Positions 43,663-51,695 of a DNA stretch of 64,000 bases are shown here, in pieces. The position numbers were made by a program, and so were the translations under genes. Source of the DNA: Mytilus edulis (lineage: Eukaryota); assembly GCF_963676685.1 (NCBI RefSeq), contig NC_092355.1, forward strand, positions 42,656,001 to 42,720,000, read 5' to 3'. The notes under the pieces are model-generated. The model saw only the letters and a list, made by a program, of their open reading frames with translations, had not been told where the DNA came from and did no database searches. Every line of letters begins with the position of its first letter. The first letter of the stretch is position 1.

Positions 43663-46050
43663 CAGTCGTCCCGCTATACCACACGACCACCTGGGCTGCT
43701 GCAGTGCAGGCGATTTGGTGTCATGATATCACAGTAGCATGGGTTCGAATCCCGGCGAGGGAAGAACCAAAAATTTGCGAAAGCACATTTACAGATCTAA
43801 AATTGTTGGGTTGATGTTTAGACTAGTTGTATATACATTATGTACACAGCCATGTATCACCATCATTGATGGCGATCCGATGGATACATCTGTTGTAGAG
43901 TTGTCACTGACTCGGACATACTTATAAATATAATTATTTTCTGTGACTGTATATTACATTAATTTGTAGGATCCTTTACTATAGATAATTTAGCTGATCT
44001 GTAACAATAACATCTTCATGCTTTATATATCATGTACTGTAGTACGTCGCTAGATTAAAACTGACGAGGAAAGGTAACACACGGCCAGCGAAAGCTCTAT
44101 TATTGTAGAGCCCAGGTGGTCGTGTGGTCTAGCGGGACGGCTGCAGTGCAGGCGATTTGGTGTCACGATATCACAGTAGCATGGGTTCGAATCCCGGCGA
44201 GGGAAGAACCAAAAACTTGCGAAAGCAAATTTACAGATCTAACATTGTTGGTTTGATGTTTAGACGAGTTGTATATACATTATGTACACAGCCATGTATC
44301 ACCATCATTGGTGGCGATCCGATGGATACATCTGTTGTAGAGTTGTCACTGACTCAGACGTACTTATAAATATAATTATTTTCTGTGACTGTATATTACA
44401 TTAATTTGTAGGATCATTTACTATAGATAATTTAGCTGATCTGTAACAATAACATCTTCATGCCTTATATATCATCTACTGTAGTACGCCGCTAGATTAA
44501 AACTGACGAGGAAAGGTAACACACGGCCAGCGAAAGCTCTATTATTGTAGAGCCCAGGTGGTCCTGTGGTCTAGCGGGACGGCTGCAGTGCAGGCGATTT
44601 GGTGTCACGATATCACAGTAGCATGGGTTCGAATCCCGGCGAGGGAAGAACCAAAAATTTGCGAAAGCAAATTTACAGATCTAACATTGTTGAATTGATG
44701 TTTAGACGAGTTGTATATACATTATGTACACAGCCATGTATCACCATCATTGATGGCGATCCGATGGATACATCTGTTGTAGAGTTGTCACTGACTCAGA
44801 CGTACTTATAAATATAATTATTTTCTGTGACTGTATATTACATTAATTTGTAGGATACTTTACTTTAGATAATTTAGCCGATCTGTAACAATAACATCTT
44901 CATGCCTTATATATCATGTACTGTAGTACGCTGCTAGATTAAAACTGACGAGGAAAGGTAACACATGGCCAGCGAAAGCTCTATTAGTTTAGAGCCCAGG
45001 TGGTCGTGTGGTCTAGCGGGACGGCTGCAGTGCAGGCGATTTGGTGTCACGATATCACAGTAGCATGGGTTCGAATCCCGGCGAGGGAAGAACCAAAAAT
45101 TTGCGAAAGCAAATTTACAGATCTAACATTGTTGAATTGATGTTTAGACGAGTTGTATATACATTATGTACACAGCCATGTATCACCATCATTGATGGCG
45201 ATCCGATGGATACATCTGTTGTAGAGTTGTCACTGCCTCAGACGTACGTATATACTTAAAAATATAATTATTTTCTGTGACTGTATCTTACATTAATTTG
45301 TAGGATCCTTTACTATAGATAATTTAGCTGATCTGTAACAATAACATCTTCATGCCTTATATATCATGTACTGCAGTACGCCGCTAGATTAAAACTGACG
45401 TGGAAAGGTAACACACGGCCAGCGAAAGCTCTTTTTTTGAGAGCCCAGGTGGTCGTGTGGTCTAGCGGGACGGCTGCAGTGCAGGCGATTTGGTGTCACG
45501 ATATCACAGTAGCATGGGTTCGAATCCCGGCGAGGGAAGAACCAAAAATTTGCGAAAGCAAATTTACAGATCTAACATTGTTGGGTTGATGTTTAGACGA
45601 GTTGTATATACATTATGTACACAGCCATGTATCACCATCATTGATGGCGATCCGATGGATACATCTGTTGTAGGGTTGTCACTGACTCAGACGTACTTAA
45701 AAATATAATTATTTTCTGTGACTGTATCTTACATTAATTTGTAGGATCCTTTACTATAGATAATTTAGCTGATCTGTAACAATAACATCTTCATGCCTTA
45801 TATATCATGTACTGCAGTACGCCGCTAGATTAAAACTGACGTGGAAAGGTAACACACGGCCAGCGAAAGCTCTTTTTTTTGAGAGCCCAGGTGGTCGTGT
45901 GGTCTAGCGGGACGGCTGCAGTGCAGGCGATTTGGTGTCACGATATCACAGTAGCATGGGTTCGAATCCCGGCGAGGGAAGAACCAAAAATTTGCGAAAG
46001 CAAATTTACAGATCTAACATTGTTGGGTTGATGTTTAGACGAGTTGTATA
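43663..46050 (+). repeat. Tandem array of ~5.4 tRNA-headed 442-bp units
   Basis: Unit heads (agagcccaggtgg) at 44107, 44549, 44991, 45440 and 45882 (periods 442, 442, 449, 442). The first unit starts with an inverted head at 43663-43697. The last unit is cut ~165 nt in, at (TA)n. Confidence 0.97.
44107..44205 (+). ncRNA. tRNA-derived head (Pol III A and B boxes) of the array unit, repeated in each unit; not a functional tRNA
   Basis: A-box-like TGGTCGTGTGGTCTAG and perfect B box GGTTCGAATCC, separated by a long variable-arm-like hairpin (Leu/Ser type). Acceptor stem is poor. Confidence 0.75.
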
Positions 46051-46084
46051 TATATATATATATACATATAACTCGTCTAAACAT

Positions 46085-47852
46085 ATATATATAGTTATAG
46101 TGTCTAAAAATAGCAACAATCAACATTCAATCTATCTAGGTGTGGATCAGTTTGTAAATAAACTAATGCAGTTACTAAATTAAATTATATAAGTGTCTAA
46201 GAATGTAACTTTAACACACTAATGAGTGTTATAAAATTAGTTGTTATTTTTATATATTATTCACGCAATATTTCGCTAAACAAATTAGCTTCATCGGGCG
46301 TGTGCATCTATCTAGGTTAAATCGGATGCATGACAAAAAATATCTTTGTAGCTTGAGCTACACAAAGTTTGTGTAAAAGTTTAACAGATTGATTGATGGT
46401 CTATATAAAACATATTTTTGCCGTTTATTGTACATAATAATTTTTGAATCTGAACAAATAGTTGTTGTAGTTAAATAGAATGAAATTTATGATTTATTCC
46501 TTTGGTTTTGGGTAGAACTGTTTTTCATCCCTCTCATTAAGTCCGTCAGGTTCAAGAGTACGTAGCTGATGCATCCAGAACCTTTCTCTCTGTTTTCTTT
46601 TTTCGGTGTCCCAATTTTGGTTTACCTCAATTATTTGAAAGGTGATATTATCAAAAGTATGTCCTGTTCTTAAGAGGTGTCTCGTAATTGGACAGTTTCT
46701 TTCTTTTGTATAGAACGACCGGTGATTGTTAAGTCTGATGTTGAAATTAGTTTCTGTTTCACCAACATACTGCAGCTTGCAAGTTCCGCAAGTAATAATA
46801 TAAATACTATTTTCCGTTTTGCAATTAGATGTAACATAGATGTTGTATCGCTGCTTTGTTACTGTGCTGCTGAAAGAGTGGTCAGTGTCAGCGGCTTTAC
46901 AGCACTTACAATTGCTCCTACCGCATTGTTTGTAACACCCAAATTTAGAAGTTTCTTGTTTCTTTACTTTTGATGTCACAAGTATGTCTTTGAGATTTTT
47001 GGGTCTGCGATAGGCAATAATAGGAGGTGATGGAAAAATTTCTTTTAAGGAAGAGTCATTTTCGATAAGACGCCAGTGCTTTCGGATAGTAGGTGAAATG
47101 TTTGTCAAATCGGGATGGAAGGTTACAACAAACGGAATTCTATCTTCACGGGTCGTCTTATCTTTGTATTCCATGAGGCTAGCTCGATCTTTTTCTTGGG
47201 CTTTATCAAAAGCGTCTGTGATGTTTTTGGTTTTGTATCCTCTTGATTTCAGCTGTGTTTTAGTTGTCCCAAACGATAGTTAAGTTTGGATTCCGAGGAG
47301 CAAATTCGCTTTAGTCTGATGGCTTGACTGTAATGTATACTCCTGGAGCAGTGTTTCGGGTGACAACTTTTTGGAGAAAGGAACTGGTGTTTATCAGTTT
47401 TCTTTGTGTGAAGGTCAGTTGTCATGACCCCGTTTTTTACAAATGTGGTGGTGTCGAGAAAAGCAATTTTCTCGCTTGAAAATTCAGATGTAAATTTAAT
47501 TGAGTGATGGAACTGATTACATTGATCTAAGAAATCTTGCAAATGTTCTGCAGTATCGTTCAATTTCATGTCAATGTCATCAATAAAACGGAGCTATGAC
47601 AAGGGTTTGTATGGCACACTCAAAAGGATGCGTTCTTCGAGATCCCCCATAAAAATGTTGGCAAAAGAAGGTGCCATTTTTGTTCCCATACTAGTTCCGT
47701 CAATCTGTAAAAAGTGCTTGTCGTTGAAAACAAAGTTGTTATTTTCAAGCACTAGCTTCAGCAATTGAACTAGGCAGTCAGTTTGGGAAAGTTTATCCTT
47801 TCGAGTATTCCACACTTTTTCACACGCGGCTATTCCTTCATCTTTTGGAATA
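46085..47852 (-). mobile_element. 5'-truncated Penelope-like element (RT + Cys-rich linker + C-terminal GIY-YIG), Neptune-type, disrupted
   Basis: RT motifs QIDGTSMGTKMAPSFANIFM, LRFIDD, IAFLD, TDKHQFL..SCHPKH. Linker CYKQCGRSNCKCC. Endonuclease SIYIITCGTCKLQYVGET..RLNNHR..RERFWMHQLRTLEPDGLN. One stop near 47594 and a frameshift near 47250. Confidence 0.92.
46262..46302 (-). ncRNA. Minimal type I hammerhead ribozyme motif downstream of the PLE ORF (U4C core variant)
   Basis: Minus strand reads CACGC-CCGATGA-A-GCTAA-TTTGT-TTAGC-GAAA-TA-TT-GCGTG. Stem I CACGC/GCGTG, stem II GCTAA/TTAGC, palindromic short stem III. Confidence 0.75.
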
Positions 47853-48361
47853 ATTTTAAAACGTGTTCGCTGATCATTTTTGCATTCTATACAGATATTC
47901 ACCTATTTTGAAAAAAGAGTTTTTAAGTAATATATGAGAAAATTAAAAGCACAGTTGTACTATTTTGTTACCATTTTCATTTAAAGTAGTTCAACATGTT
48001 CAACGAGATTCTATGCAAAACTTATCAAATTCTTCTACATAGTCTATTTACTGTACTTTGAACTTCCGAAATGTTCAATCTACATGTATTTGATTTGAGA
48101 ATGATCATTGGTAGCATGCAGATTTCCGATATAAGCACTTTAAAACCTACAGTATTTATATTTTGTTGCAAAAACATCTCCTTTAGATACAAACTGGACA
48201 CATGATGATATTCAAAACAATATAGACACCCTTTGATATCGAAAGGTAATGAAACTGGACCTATCAATAGAATGCAGGTGAATGGTAGTAGGACACGAAC
48301 AAAATTAAGTATGAAAGAGCTGAAGATAAACTTGATTCTTTATCTATTACAGATTTTTAAA

Positions 48362-50203
48362 ATGAGTGATACGGAAAGAGAACTGTCTCGAAAGATTTAC
48401 CAGTATTTATGTAATATCGTTGGAACAGAAGAAGTTGTAAAAGCCAGAAGAAATATATTTCGTGTAATGGACAGGGTTTTACACATTCCAAACCTAACAC
48501 AAATAAGTAGTGGGAGTAAAGCTGAAGGTTTACACCTCAAAGGCAGTGATTATGATGTAATGATTGTTTCTAAAAGAATTCTCGTTTACGAGAATAAGAA
48601 TGTGTCATCTTTTACACCACTGTCCATGGATTTAATCATGGACAACAGTGATACAAAACCAGGATTTACAAAGCTTAAATTTGAATGCATTTCAAACGCA
48701 TACCTTTTGCCTACTAACGCATGGGTTGAGATTGTGGAAGGAGAAGCCTATTTTTCAAGTAAATTATTTCGGGAGCATAAATGTCCAGAGAATATGATTA
48801 TTCATGGACCATGTCGATCTTCCCTAGATGATACTTTTGATTCTGCACGTTGTTTCTTGTGTGAGACATGGATTAAACCTGCTCATAAATGGATAATAAG
48901 ATCGAGACCGTATTGGCCTGATTGCAAACTAGTAAAGGCTATTGTAAAGCGTGGTGTTTTGTTTGTTCCTATTGGTTGTAAAGGGTCAAAAAATGAAGAT
49001 TTGGAATGGCGTATATCGTTTTCTATGGCAGAGAAGCAACTTATTTTTTCCTTTTCGCATACCCAGTTATTATGTTACGCTTTGCTGAAAATAATTCTGA
49101 AAGACATAATCAAGATAAAACATAGTGATCTAGTTTGTTCATACTTTCTTAAAACTATTATGTTCTGGTTATGCGAAGAATCAAATCCTTTCGAATGGCA
49201 TTCTGGGAATATGATTCCGTGTTTCGTAAAATGTCTGAGGCGACTGATATACTGCGTAGAATATAAAACCTGTCTTCACTATTTTATTCCAGATAACAAC
49301 TTTTTCGAATGTCGATTTACTGAGAATCAACATAGGACTTTACTTGATACGTTGCATGATATAGATAATTCATTATGGACTTACGTTTTCCATACAGCTA
49401 CATTTTACAATTTTAGATTAGAACAAAGAGCTTCACAATCACTTTATTTGAAAGCATCTGCATTGTCCTGCTTGGCATTTCCTAAAGGTTTTCATATCAA
49501 TGTGAAGTATAGCAAAATCAAACAAATACTCGCTCGTTTAATTAAATTAAAAAATACAGAACTAAGAACGTACATGATGTCACTGATTTCAAACTACTGG
49601 ATGCAATCACAAGACTACACCAACTTTATAGATAGAAACAAATCTGTGTACAAGCAATACCAAATAAGTTTATGTTGTTTTAAGGCAGGGCTACATTGCG
49701 ATGTTAGTTCAACATGGTTGTTGTTAGCATCTTTATTTTATAAATTCAAGAGATTTAACGAATGTAAATATATTTTAAACTATTGTCTGTCAAAATAAAC
49801 GCCGGATAAAATTATATTAAGTTTCAAAAACACTATGTCAGAACAGACTTTGTTCCAGAAATACAATGACGCGTTTGGATTGCTGTTAACTTGTAAACAT
49901 TTAATCATTAATAAATTGTCGTTTAACAAGCCACATAATTTATTACCTGTAGAATTGATACCTTCAACTCAACAAGATGAACGTGACATAATACGAGTAT
50001 TTCCGTCTGTTTTGTATTTGCATATGTTATCATTTTTGTGTTGTCATCATCTTGGAGATAACAGAGGCAAACTAAATGCACTCCGAGATCTACAACTAAC
50101 CATTCGAGATAGGTACTTTATCTCCACAAACGAGACGCATTTCCAAATTGCATACAGTTGTCTGAAAATTGCTAAAAGTAAGATGTTGTTGGTAAATGCC
50201 TAA
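48362..50203 (+). pseudogene. cGLR paralog copy 3; one in-frame TAA at 49796-49798 gives a 478-aa product with intact catalytic core
   Basis: SSGSKAEGLHLKGSDYDVM, DDTFDSA, EWRISFSMAEKQL. SK*TPDK stands where paralogs have SKCTPDK, and the frame continues open to 50203. Acceptor ttacAG at 48351-48352. Confidence 0.88.
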
Positions 50204-50479: not shown

Positions 50480-51695
50480 TGGACTTTACAGAGCTAATGT
50501 CTAAGAAGATTGAACTCGTACATACTGAAGTATAACTTTGTCTTGAGAGATTTTCTACGACAAAACAAGAAGACACCAACACATTGTTAGAATTAAAGAA
50601 AACTTTAAATTTGTGTTACTTGAAAAACAGTCTTTATTCAGATGAATATATAAAATTTCTAAAGAACACTAAAACAGAAGAAAGTCTCCAAGTGTATGAG
50701 GAGCATGACATTGAAGATGCCAAGTACAAAAACATTTTTGAACGAGCACTTCTACAAATGAAAGTGTCGGACAAGGAAGAATCTAAATTAACACATATAT
50801 CTGAAGCACATTCTAGAACTTCTTCAAACTCCAGCTCAGTTACAACCAGAAAGCATGCAAAGGCAGAAGCAGCCCAGGCTAAGTTTGAATTTGCCATGAA
50901 GGAGGCAGATTAACAGAAACAGAAGGCTTACATGGAAGAGCAAGAAAAAGTTCCAAGTGCAAAGACATTTACCTAAAAGGTTGAGCTGGAAGCTGAATTA
51001 GAACTGCTTTACTATAAGAAGGAAGCGACGGCCACTACTGCAGAGGCTGATGCGCTTGAACACGACCAAAATGTTTGTGATAGTAAAAAGTCTGATCTCC
51101 TTCAATCAAAAATCGTTTTTGAACGAACTATTCAATATGTAGAACAGCAACTTCTTCAAGAAAAAGCTGTAAAATTACCCCAGTCGATTATATTGTACTA
51201 TGTGACCCGTTCACAAATCAGACACCAGGTGATGCATTCCATGAACATTCACATATGCCACCACCAAAACCGTCTCGCCAAAAATATGATGTGACAAGTA
51301 TAAGTGCCGGTGGTAATGATCACGATATAAATATACAAGTTCAAGAACATGCATTGAATCCTAATGCACCTCAATTTCAACCTGACATACGCACACATCA
51401 GAAAGCACCTCTATTCAACCTGACATAAGCACATTTCAGAACGCACCTAAATTTCGTCCTGAAATAAGCAGACATCAGAATATTGCTACAGATCTCACAC
51501 GATTTCTTCTAAAGAAAGATTTGCTGTTATCAAGATTAACAACGTACAGTGATAGACCAGAAATGTACGCTGTATGGAAGGTTAGATTCAAAAACAGATC
51601 AAGCGAACTTTCTGTTACGGCAATGGAAGAATTAGATCTTATGGTGAAATGGTTAGGTCCTTAATTTACACGGCATGCAAACAGTATTAGATCAT
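50480..51695 (+). mobile_element. BEL/Pao LTR retrotransposon gag fragment, decayed
   Basis: Ser-rich plus coiled-coil SSNSSS..AKAEAAQAKFEF. Downstream DLTRFLLKKDLLLSRLTTYSDRPEMYAVWK..EELDLMVKWLGP resembles Pao gag. Confidence 0.7.

Follow-up and report, generated by a model that had tools for sequence, protein, structure and literature searches.

The locus described here raises the question of how a small repeat comes to be copied and inserted as a partial tandem array beside a Penelope-like element (PLE). It lies in a 64,000-nucleotide (nt) stretch of the Mytilus edulis genome (NCBI RefSeq assembly GCF_963676685.1, contig NC_092355.1, positions 42,656,001 to 42,720,000 of the forward strand), which we call the window, and consists of head-to-tail units of 442 base pairs (bp) that meet a PLE tail to tail at a (TA)n microsatellite. 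Our analysis suggests that the 442-bp unit is likely to be a young (about 2% from its consensus), non-autonomous retroelement that is copied in the manner of PLEs, with the neighboring PLE lineage as the best candidate for the machinery.

Tandem Repeats Finder (TRF) placed the array at 43698-46052, with a period of 442 bp, 5.3 copies, and 96% matches. BLAST with one unit as the query (window 44140-44581, numbered q1 to q442) found 5.36 plus-strand units at 43698-46066, each with A and B boxes, in agreement with the roughly 5.4 box-bearing head-to-tail units counted in a first-pass annotation that was made from the sequence alone. The unit has a GC content of 40.8% and consists of a short interspersed element (SINE)-like 3' module of ∼175 nt, in which tRNA-like A and B boxes are followed by a tail ending in TTTAGACGAGTTGTATATA, and a body of ∼267 nt. 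The window array is among the most heterogeneous (94 to 97% identity between units); its fourth unit is 449 bp long, and two subtypes are joined in register, units 1 to 3 having the loop ATTATTGT and units 4 to 6 having T7-8 G. As the first-pass annotation had noticed, the array stops inside a unit: its 3' end falls at q134-141, where the terminus (...GACGAGTTGTATATA / ...ATGTTTAGACGAGTTGTATATA) runs into (TA)n at 46047-46069. At the other end, an inverted 31-bp piece of the unit adjoins the first forward unit and represents the “5' inversion” of the array. Beyond the microsatellite, a 15-nt inverted copy of the tail forms a 27-nt palindrome with the array end and is an abortive or second-strand priming remnant.

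In the genome (1.37 Gb, 14 large contigs), BLAST matches to the unit at 95 to 98% identity were found on all large contigs. Pattern searches returned 6,170 exact matches for a 23-nt tail probe, 3,808 for the internal tandem junction (tail into next unit), and 4,086 for a body probe, with no matches for the reversed-pattern control in each case. The family thus comprises about 4,000 units (∼1.8 Mb) and roughly 2,000 or more insertions or ends. The units are 98.0% identical to the family consensus. Identity within arrays has a median of 98.4% versus 97.1% between loci, and several arrays are 99 to 100% uniform; such sequence uniformity fits arrays that would each have been made in one event from one template. 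The largest array seen, at C9:75182801-75192410, has ∼17 minus-strand units joined head to head at q320-334 with ∼4.4 plus-strand units.

The ends of the copies were characterized at about 35 loci with flanks, which were best BLAST hits and therefore a non-random sample, and by whole-genome pattern counts. Thirty-one of 46 3' ends fell at q134-151 (binomial P ∼2e-32 for the 18-nt window), and five others fell at q235-240, where a minor end site follows the same pattern (..CAGACGTACTTATA followed by TA). The 47 5' ends, by comparison, were scattered over q1-419, and 20 of them (∼43%) abutted an inverted copy of the element; at 6 of the 46 3' ends, a short inverted tail piece lay across the (TA)n, as in the window. 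The 43 complete insertions were 0.68 to 7.34 units long (median, 2.23). (TA)n was present at 28 of the 46 3' junctions and at 22 of the 47 5' flanks, and its presence on 5' flanks too indicates that it is the target and not a tail. Some insertions into targets without a TA run still ended at q134-141 (loci L002, L007, L042, and L043), so the site at which copying starts must be set by the RNA and not only by microhomology. No target site duplication (TSD), poly(A), or long interspersed element (LINE)-like tail was seen at the flanks of the sampled copies, and no transposon termini were found around the sampled arrays.

Five-prime truncation, partial tandems, inverted 5' copies, short extensions or “tails,” and a (TA)n bias linked to the Cys linker are insertion marks of PLEs (PMC8557442). 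Partial tandems with a common end at GAGTTGTA(TA)n, frequent 5' inversions, and microsatellite targeting visible on both flanks had all been expected for a non-autonomous element integrated by PLE-type machinery, and all were found. Together with the fixed 3' ends, they make PLE-type retrotransposition of the 442-bp unit highly probable.

The element with reverse transcriptase (RT) and GIY-YIG domains that had been seen to end at the (TA)n tract on the opposite strand was identified as a 5'-truncated, frame-broken canonical PLE with a C-terminal endonuclease. An intact relative (L051:5202-7292) carries the Pfam domains RVT_1 and GIY-YIG in one open reading frame (ORF), to which the window protein is 95% identical over residues 439-697 and 83% identical over residues 246-486. 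The window PLE has a DKG motif and a GIY-YIG domain with an internal CxxC, and the two copies at L051 lie head to head. The Cys-rich linker is common to Neptune and Nematis PLEs (PMC8557442). The neighboring PLE resembles these endonuclease-bearing (EN+) elements in RVT_1, the Cys-rich linker, GIY-YIG, a 3' minimal-hammerhead-like motif, head-to-head copies, and (TA)n insertion; it differs from them in a C for U4 in the hammerhead core, and Neptune is a putative clade label. 

The minimal hammerhead assigned to this PLE by the first-pass annotation was upheld in part. The motif fits published features of minimal hammerheads, with a helix I of 5 bp (CACGC/GCGUG), an A left unpaired between positions 9 and 10.1, a 5-bp helix II with G10.1-C11.1 as its basal pair, and GAAA followed by a palindromic AUAU in place of helix III. 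On the other side, the core is CCGAUGA, with C instead of U4, in all three subfamily copies, and Rfam reported no hammerhead in the 42- to 52-kb region of the window, nor in the 481-nt tail region at E values up to 10. A relative at L035 (75% identical in the region) has the canonical CUGAUGA and, in helix I, a U-A pair for the C-G pair of the window, which is a compensatory change. Judged from these sequences, the motif is real for the PLE lineage.

The three PLE copies end in ..CTATTTTTAGACACTATA(TA)n / ..TTTTTAGACACTATA(TA)n or, further upstream, in ..TTCTTAGACACTTATA(TA)n, and the relative at L035 does likewise. The PLE and the 442-bp element hence have in common the (TA)n target, two alternative ends, and the motif (T)TAGAC-N3-6-TATA. 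A PLE tail probe gave 282 genomic matches, and two of the seven PLE tails on C1, in the range with known 442-family positions, lay within 300 bp of a family match (P ∼4e-5). The tail-to-tail neighborhood also occurs in L035 and just outside L010, and the expected co-location of the unit with PLE 3' ends was thus borne out in this genome. PLE copies with open frames of up to 953 to 980 amino acids are present, their endonuclease domain being 94 to 96% identical to that of the window PLE in the 953- to 959-amino-acid frames and 76% identical in the 980-amino-acid frame. On this sequence evidence, we put the neighboring lineage at even chances of being the actual partner. Integration could have been of the same PLE type with a different (TA)n-targeting partner, for example, a Naiad, and the adjacent PLE would then be a mere neighbor at the same microsatellite. 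Naiads, too, target (TA)n; they reach very high numbers in mussels, whose genomes they dominate (PMC8557442), and the unit has just the short end motif in common with the adjacent PLE. We nevertheless consider a different partner rather unlikely, since the neighboring lineage, the one whose tails were compared, has the same two-site AGAC..TATA end behavior and long open frames and co-locates with the 442-bp family above chance.

The same junctions bear on a more conventional reading, in which the unit is an ordinary tRNA-derived SINE moved by a LINE, the arrays arose by unequal crossing-over, and (TA)n is the microsatellite tail of the element itself. Tandem and palindromic SINE structures in bivalves have been put down to recombination (PMC11481361), and some arrays, including that of the window with 94 to 97% identity between units, are heterogeneous. 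However, recombination does not give scattered internal starts of the first unit together with a constant end of the last unit, inverted 5' pieces abut 43% of the copies, (TA)n is also found on the 5' flank, and TSDs, poly(A), and LINE-like tails were not seen at the sampled flanks. With a median of 2.23 units per insertion, the copies are not the ordinary LINE-tailed monomers with TSDs that this reading calls for, and we regard it as very unlikely.

The SINE-like character of the unit lies in its tRNA-like module, which is present in every unit of the window array. The module starts with (G)AGAGCCCAGG and has the B box GGTTCGAATCC, exact in each unit, with the A-box-like motif TGGTCTAGCGGGA ∼58 nt upstream; the latter matches 9 of 11 positions of the A-box consensus. 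The chances that the module is a working RNA polymerase III (Pol III) promoter appear evenly divided. The unit also has a T7-8 run, which is expected to stop Pol III. This run immediately precedes the next tRNA-like start and occupies the apical loop of a long conserved three-part hairpin, in which the module's 5' half is paired to sequence lying upstream of it. The outer stem is formed by CGCTAGA with TCTAGCG; the 10-bp middle stem, CACACGGCCA with TGGTCGTGTG, takes in the A-box region; and the apical stem (GCTCT/AGAGC, 45869-45886) has the T run in its loop. When folded as a circle, the consensus has a predicted energy of −136 kcal/mol versus −105.6 ± 5.5 kcal/mol for dinucleotide shuffles (z = −5.5), with 68% of the bases predicted to be paired. 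Variability of the junction loop was considered as a sign of untemplated joining and rejected, as the loop types are subfamily specific and mostly uniform per array.

A sister family of ∼476 bp allowed a comparison of these features. Its tail, TTTGGTGTAATTTTCAGACTTATATA, has 351 genomic matches, often 474 to 478 bp apart; it is ∼68% identical to the 442-bp unit (compared at L035:692-1019), and the tail homology scored 66 versus 19.7 ± 4.0 for shuffles. Both of the loci examined (L035:692-1019 and L051:2563-2800) lie beside a PLE tail at (TA)n. The sister family keeps two AGAC..TATA end sites, the A and B boxes, and the three-part hairpin with a T-rich apical loop, with at least three compensatory pairs relative to the unit (outer stem, G-C to U-A; middle stem, A-U to U-A; apical stem, C-G to A-U). 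This comparison argues that the long hairpin is selected, and such selection would imply either that a functional RNA crosses the T run or that the 5' and 3' ends of the RNA are held together by the stems. 

A B-box scan for further SINE families mostly found the unit again, the motif being nearly palindromic. One array flank (L034:2890-3120) contained a SINE-like sequence, tRNA derived and unrelated, that has GCCGCCATGGTGTAGTGGTTAGTG.. as its head and GGTTCGATTCC as its B box.

The 5' ends, although scattered, have a hot spot at the start of the tRNA-like module. Counting (TA)4 followed within 0 to 6 nt by a unit anchor, genome-wide, we obtained 273 matches (∼170 distinct sites) for the module start (GCCCAGGTGGTCGTG), compared with 125 (∼66 sites) for q87-93, which served as a control for hairpin plus T/A microhomology, 32 (∼23 sites) for q176-182, and 19 (∼18 sites) for an anchor just before q1. 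The enrichment is roughly 8-fold, with junctions at which TA.. is followed by GCCCAGG, GAGCCCAGG, or GAGAGCCCAGG. In about 1 in 7 TA-flanked insertions, the copy stops no more than 6 nt from the 5' end of the tRNA-like module, and most copies extend further. The hot spot would fit RT run-off if an RNA had its 5' end at the start of this module, whether through Pol III initiation or through processing.

For evidence of such an RNA, reads of four raw RNA-seq runs with the same species label were mapped to window positions 45600-46500, a stretch that comprises the unit in register q129..q442, q1..q141, the (TA)n, and the PLE 3' untranslated region (UTR). Read joints at 46039-46103 were dropped as repeats, and back-joined reads were left out of the count. 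In the three stranded runs, of each of which about 6% was read, about 0.05% of the reads mapped to this stretch, with depths of 900 to 2,500 (first mate on the minus strand) versus 15 to 130 in the opposite direction; the depth over the PLE 3' UTR was 2 to 18. Plus-strand reads run into the TruSeq read-2 adapter, which, with the usual dUTP chemistry, means that the RNA is most likely the plus strand, that is, the sense of the boxes and of the integrated copies. Coverage was gapless around the unit, and the first bin crossing q141/q142 was as deep as its neighbors. The T run at 45873 was spanned by 905 reads, most with T7, the commonest genomic length, and the stranded runs showed no pile of read starts or ends, including at the tRNA-like start. 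Coverage without a gap or an end pile indicates that the bulk RNA is multimeric or circular and not a unit-length Pol III transcript ending at the T run; the reads fit a circle and a long multimer equally. A coverage dip at 45848-45878 coincides with several differences of this unit from the expressed majority and is at least partly a mapping effect.

Three minor features of the reads were also recorded. Reads in the opposite direction amounted to ∼10% of the main direction over q1-120 (window 45910-46033) and to 1 to 3% over the body. In two runs, ∼10 to 18 short-insert reads per run met the adapter exactly at 45846-45848 (q ∼375, in the hairpin bulge), which may be a minor RNA end. In three runs, reads skipped 56 nt (45839-45896), so that they lacked the apex of the hairpin together with the beginning of the tRNA-like module; they probably derive from an expressed deletion subfamily.

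Several points weigh against a PLE-copied, Pol III-type element or against parts of this interpretation. In addition to the non-random sampling of loci, to the abundance of Naiads, and to the dependence of the strand call on the assumption of a dUTP-type library, the similarity between the unit and the PLE tails does not extend significantly past the end motif: local alignment of the last 90 nt gave P = 0.09 against 2,000 shuffles, and for the motif itself, noticed post hoc in three independent occurrences, our own rough estimate is P = 0.004. Structural support from the sister family comes from one sister copy, and within the 442-bp family, which is too young, covariation amounted to 3 double changes versus 331 broken cells. 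The Pol III step is challenged by the reads, most of which pass through the T7-8 run and do not pile up at the tRNA-like start. The hot spot could instead reflect a strong RT stop where the enzyme meets the apical hairpin at its 3' arm, and the hairpin-plus-microhomology control window (q87-93) is itself enriched 3 to 4 times. Neither Rfam nor ARAGORN called a tRNA in the unit, in the sister copy, or in 21 loci. The description of the unit as tRNA headed in the first-pass annotation consequently rests on the A- and B-box motifs and on homology to the SINE-like sister family, in which they are kept, and it stands in that sense but not as a called tRNA.

The RNA data also bear on the reading that the unit is satellite DNA spread at the DNA level, by reinserted extrachromosomal circles or by carriage on Helitrons or other DNA transposons, with incidental transcription. 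Tandem arrays on all chromosomes and high identity within arrays would suit it; however, reinsertion of DNA circles would break the unit randomly at both ends, whereas the copies keep one end constant; transposon termini were not observed next to the arrays sampled, and the RNA is strongly one stranded and far more abundant than that of the adjoining PLE. We therefore think it most improbable. Least credible of all is a hammerhead retrozyme, in which CUGACGAG...CGAAA upstream of the tRNA-like start would self-cleave to give unit-length RNA: units 1 to 3 do have a core-like CUGACGA and GAAA with a 5-bp stem in the place of helix III, and published retrozymes of the mussel Mytilus galloprovincialis are tandem units of 350 to 390 bp (PMC7229834), but the look-alike (CTGACGTGG, 45836-45844, in the large bulge of the hairpin) has a C at position 16.1 and forms neither helix I nor helix II, CUGACGU is found in the family consensus and in 86 to 90% of RNA reads (10 to 14% carry the A), the sister family has unrelated sequence at this position, read ends do not pile up at the would-be cleavage site, and Rfam found no hammerhead in the unit at E values up to 10 on 700 nt, nor at the gathering score on 97 kb. 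We thus ruled out CUGACGAG..GAAA as a hammerhead, and the earlier remark that the unit has no obvious ribozyme of its own was correct.

With PLE-type retrotransposition as the preferred reading, the observations can be assembled into a possible mechanism. A (TA)n-targeting PLE endonuclease would nick a TA microsatellite, and the freed TA-rich 3' end would pair with the UAUAUA that follows the AGAC box of the abundant sense RNA, where reverse transcription would start. Such priming would explain the observed constant 3' end inside the repeat unit. As a template, the RNA may be circular, a long multimer, or of unit length with its 5' and 3' ends paired so that the RT can jump from one to the other. 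On an RNA without a detectable break around the unit, the cDNA would run on for 0.7 to more than 7 units and stop at the scattered positions observed, strongly so where the tRNA-like module starts, and frequent strand switching would give the inverted 5' pieces that are seen. By analogy with the PLE pseudo-long terminal repeat (pseudo-LTR), the tRNA-like module of the upstream partial copy would most likely, and plausibly, act as an internal promoter for Pol III. The tail-to-tail position of the array and the PLE would come from their use of the same microsatellite.

A circular or panhandle template is a tentative proposal that we consider doubtful to possible. In the circular form, the unit ends would be joined by host tRNA-processing and ligation enzymes; alternatively, the Pol III transcript would form a panhandle of its 5' and 3' ends, across which the PLE RT would jump from the 5' end to the 3' end. 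It is unlikely, though conceivable, that the unit is the counterpart of a retrozyme in which the long hairpin replaces the hammerhead in bringing the unit ends together and the Pol III RNA serves as a rolling template for the PLE RT.

Compared with known systems, the unit is retrozyme-like without a ribozyme and SINE-like in its tRNA-type module. Metazoan non-LTR retrozymes are tandem units of 150 to 450 bp with type I hammerheads and abundant circular RNA and are thought to be mobilized by PLEs (PMC7229834; 10.64898/2026.07.22.740005). The unit resembles them in dispersed tandem units within this size range, low GC content, very abundant, highly self-paired RNA, presumed PLE mobilization, and occurrence in Mytilus, but it has no hammerhead or other Rfam ribozyme, has instead a module with tRNA-like A and B boxes along with a T run set in a conserved hairpin, and is 442 bp long versus the 350 to 390 bp of the published mussel retrozymes, compared by description only. 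Among pseudo-LTR-bearing non-autonomous PLE derivatives, Chlamys families have insertions of multiple copies arranged head to tail, and MRC1 is known from Chlamydomonas (PMC8557442). The unit has in common with these 5'-truncated partial tandems, microsatellite targeting, and a dependence in trans on PLEs, which here is an inferred one. The Chlamys families and MRC1 differ from it in having clear 3'-end sequence in common with an autonomous family and no small-RNA-gene module, in place of an end motif of ∼15 nt and a tRNA-like module, and the present host, unlike theirs, is an animal, with a canonical C-terminal-endonuclease PLE as candidate partner. Bivalve tRNA-SINEs have LINE-derived tails (CR1, L2, Nimb, and others) and TSDs and are mostly monomers (PMC11481361, PMC4758252), with only LINE partners reported in surveys (PMC11481361). 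The unit is like them in its tRNA-like head with A and B boxes, body, tail, thousands of copies, and tandem and palindromic arrangements, which are occasional there, and unlike them in PLE-type integration, in the lack of a LINE tail or TSD, and in that most copies exceed one unit.

Our literature search returned no paper linking a tRNA-type module or a SINE to PLE-style integration or partnership, and a full-text search with three 18- to 22-nt words of the unit (one also in RNA letters) returned no paper. If the interpretation is right, this would be the first SINE-type partnership, with a small-RNA-gene promoter, described for PLEs, and it would extend the SINE concept to a third class of retrotransposons. 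Should the tRNA-like module work as a Pol III promoter, small-RNA promoters would have been recruited by parasites of PLEs in addition to those of LINE and LTR elements. The mechanism by which PLEs produce partial tandems and inverted insertions has yet to be settled (PMC8557442). As a substrate for such work, the family is small, young, very abundant, and highly expressed, and it bears all the PLE insertion marks. With a mapped RT start, a weaker second start of the AGAC..TATA form, and a mapped strong stop, rules of template choice and of longer-than-unit copying become directly testable on an RNA of 442 nt. Pipelines for SINEs, LINEs, or satellites would misfile this family, which accounts for ∼1.8 Mb of the genome and ∼0.05% of RNA-seq reads.

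Positions of the 442-bp array, the neighboring PLE, and their parts in the window.
Feature	Position	Strand	Basis or remark
Array of 442-bp units, head-to-tail, 5.36 copies	43698-46054	+	TRF, BLAST
Inverted 31-bp unit fragment, reverse complement of q412-442 (tRNA-like module start)	43667-43697	-	BLAST, 93.5% identity
Minor second 3'-end site, q235, CAGACGTACTTA then TA-rich sequence	45688-45699	+	5 of 46 sampled copies
Long three-part hairpin, ∼q352-441	45823-45912	+	Circular and local folds (predicted)
tRNA-like module of last full unit	45886-45969	+	Start GCCCAGG 45886, A-box-like 45900-45912, B box 45959-45969
Main 3'-terminal motif TTTAGACGAGTTGTATATA	46034-46054	+	End site of 67% of sampled copies
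(TA)n microsatellite common to array and PLE; presumed target	46047-46069	.	
15-nt inverted copy of 442-family tail (AACTCGTCTAAACAT on plus strand)	46070-46084	-	
5'-truncated, frame-broken canonical C-terminal-endonuclease PLE	46083-47855	-	96.4% identity to two L051 copies; tblastn
PLE 3'-terminal motif TTGCTATTTTTAGACACTATA (minus strand), then TA repeats	46096-46116	-	Three copies compared
PLE alternative end site ..TTCTTAGACACTTATA	46188-46205	-	
Minimal type I hammerhead-like motif of PLE	46262-46302	-	Read by hand against features in PMC4209133
ORF with Cys-rich linker CX3CX4CXCC and GIY-YIG	46494-47174	-	Pfam
Two broken reverse transcriptase ORF pieces	47249-47902	-	

Some Rfam matches arose from the palindromes that form where tails meet. 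Matches to mir-297 and other microRNAs at 46026-46092 were rejected as artefacts of TA-rich tail-to-tail palindromes. A mir-8 match at L045:1728-1795, found on both strands with a score of 47.4 versus a gathering score of 47, is most likely a false positive, the sequence being a perfect palindrome of two inverted 54-nt tail fragments. Tail-to-tail hairpins of this kind could feed small-RNA pathways. Elsewhere in the window, a 38-bp tandem repeat (three copies, 80% matches) lies at 51366-51480. Just beyond the truncated PLE, an intronless ORF of 521 amino acids at 48233-49798 on the plus strand has Mab-21 nucleotidyltransferase and Mab-21_C domains (cGAS/Mab21-like).

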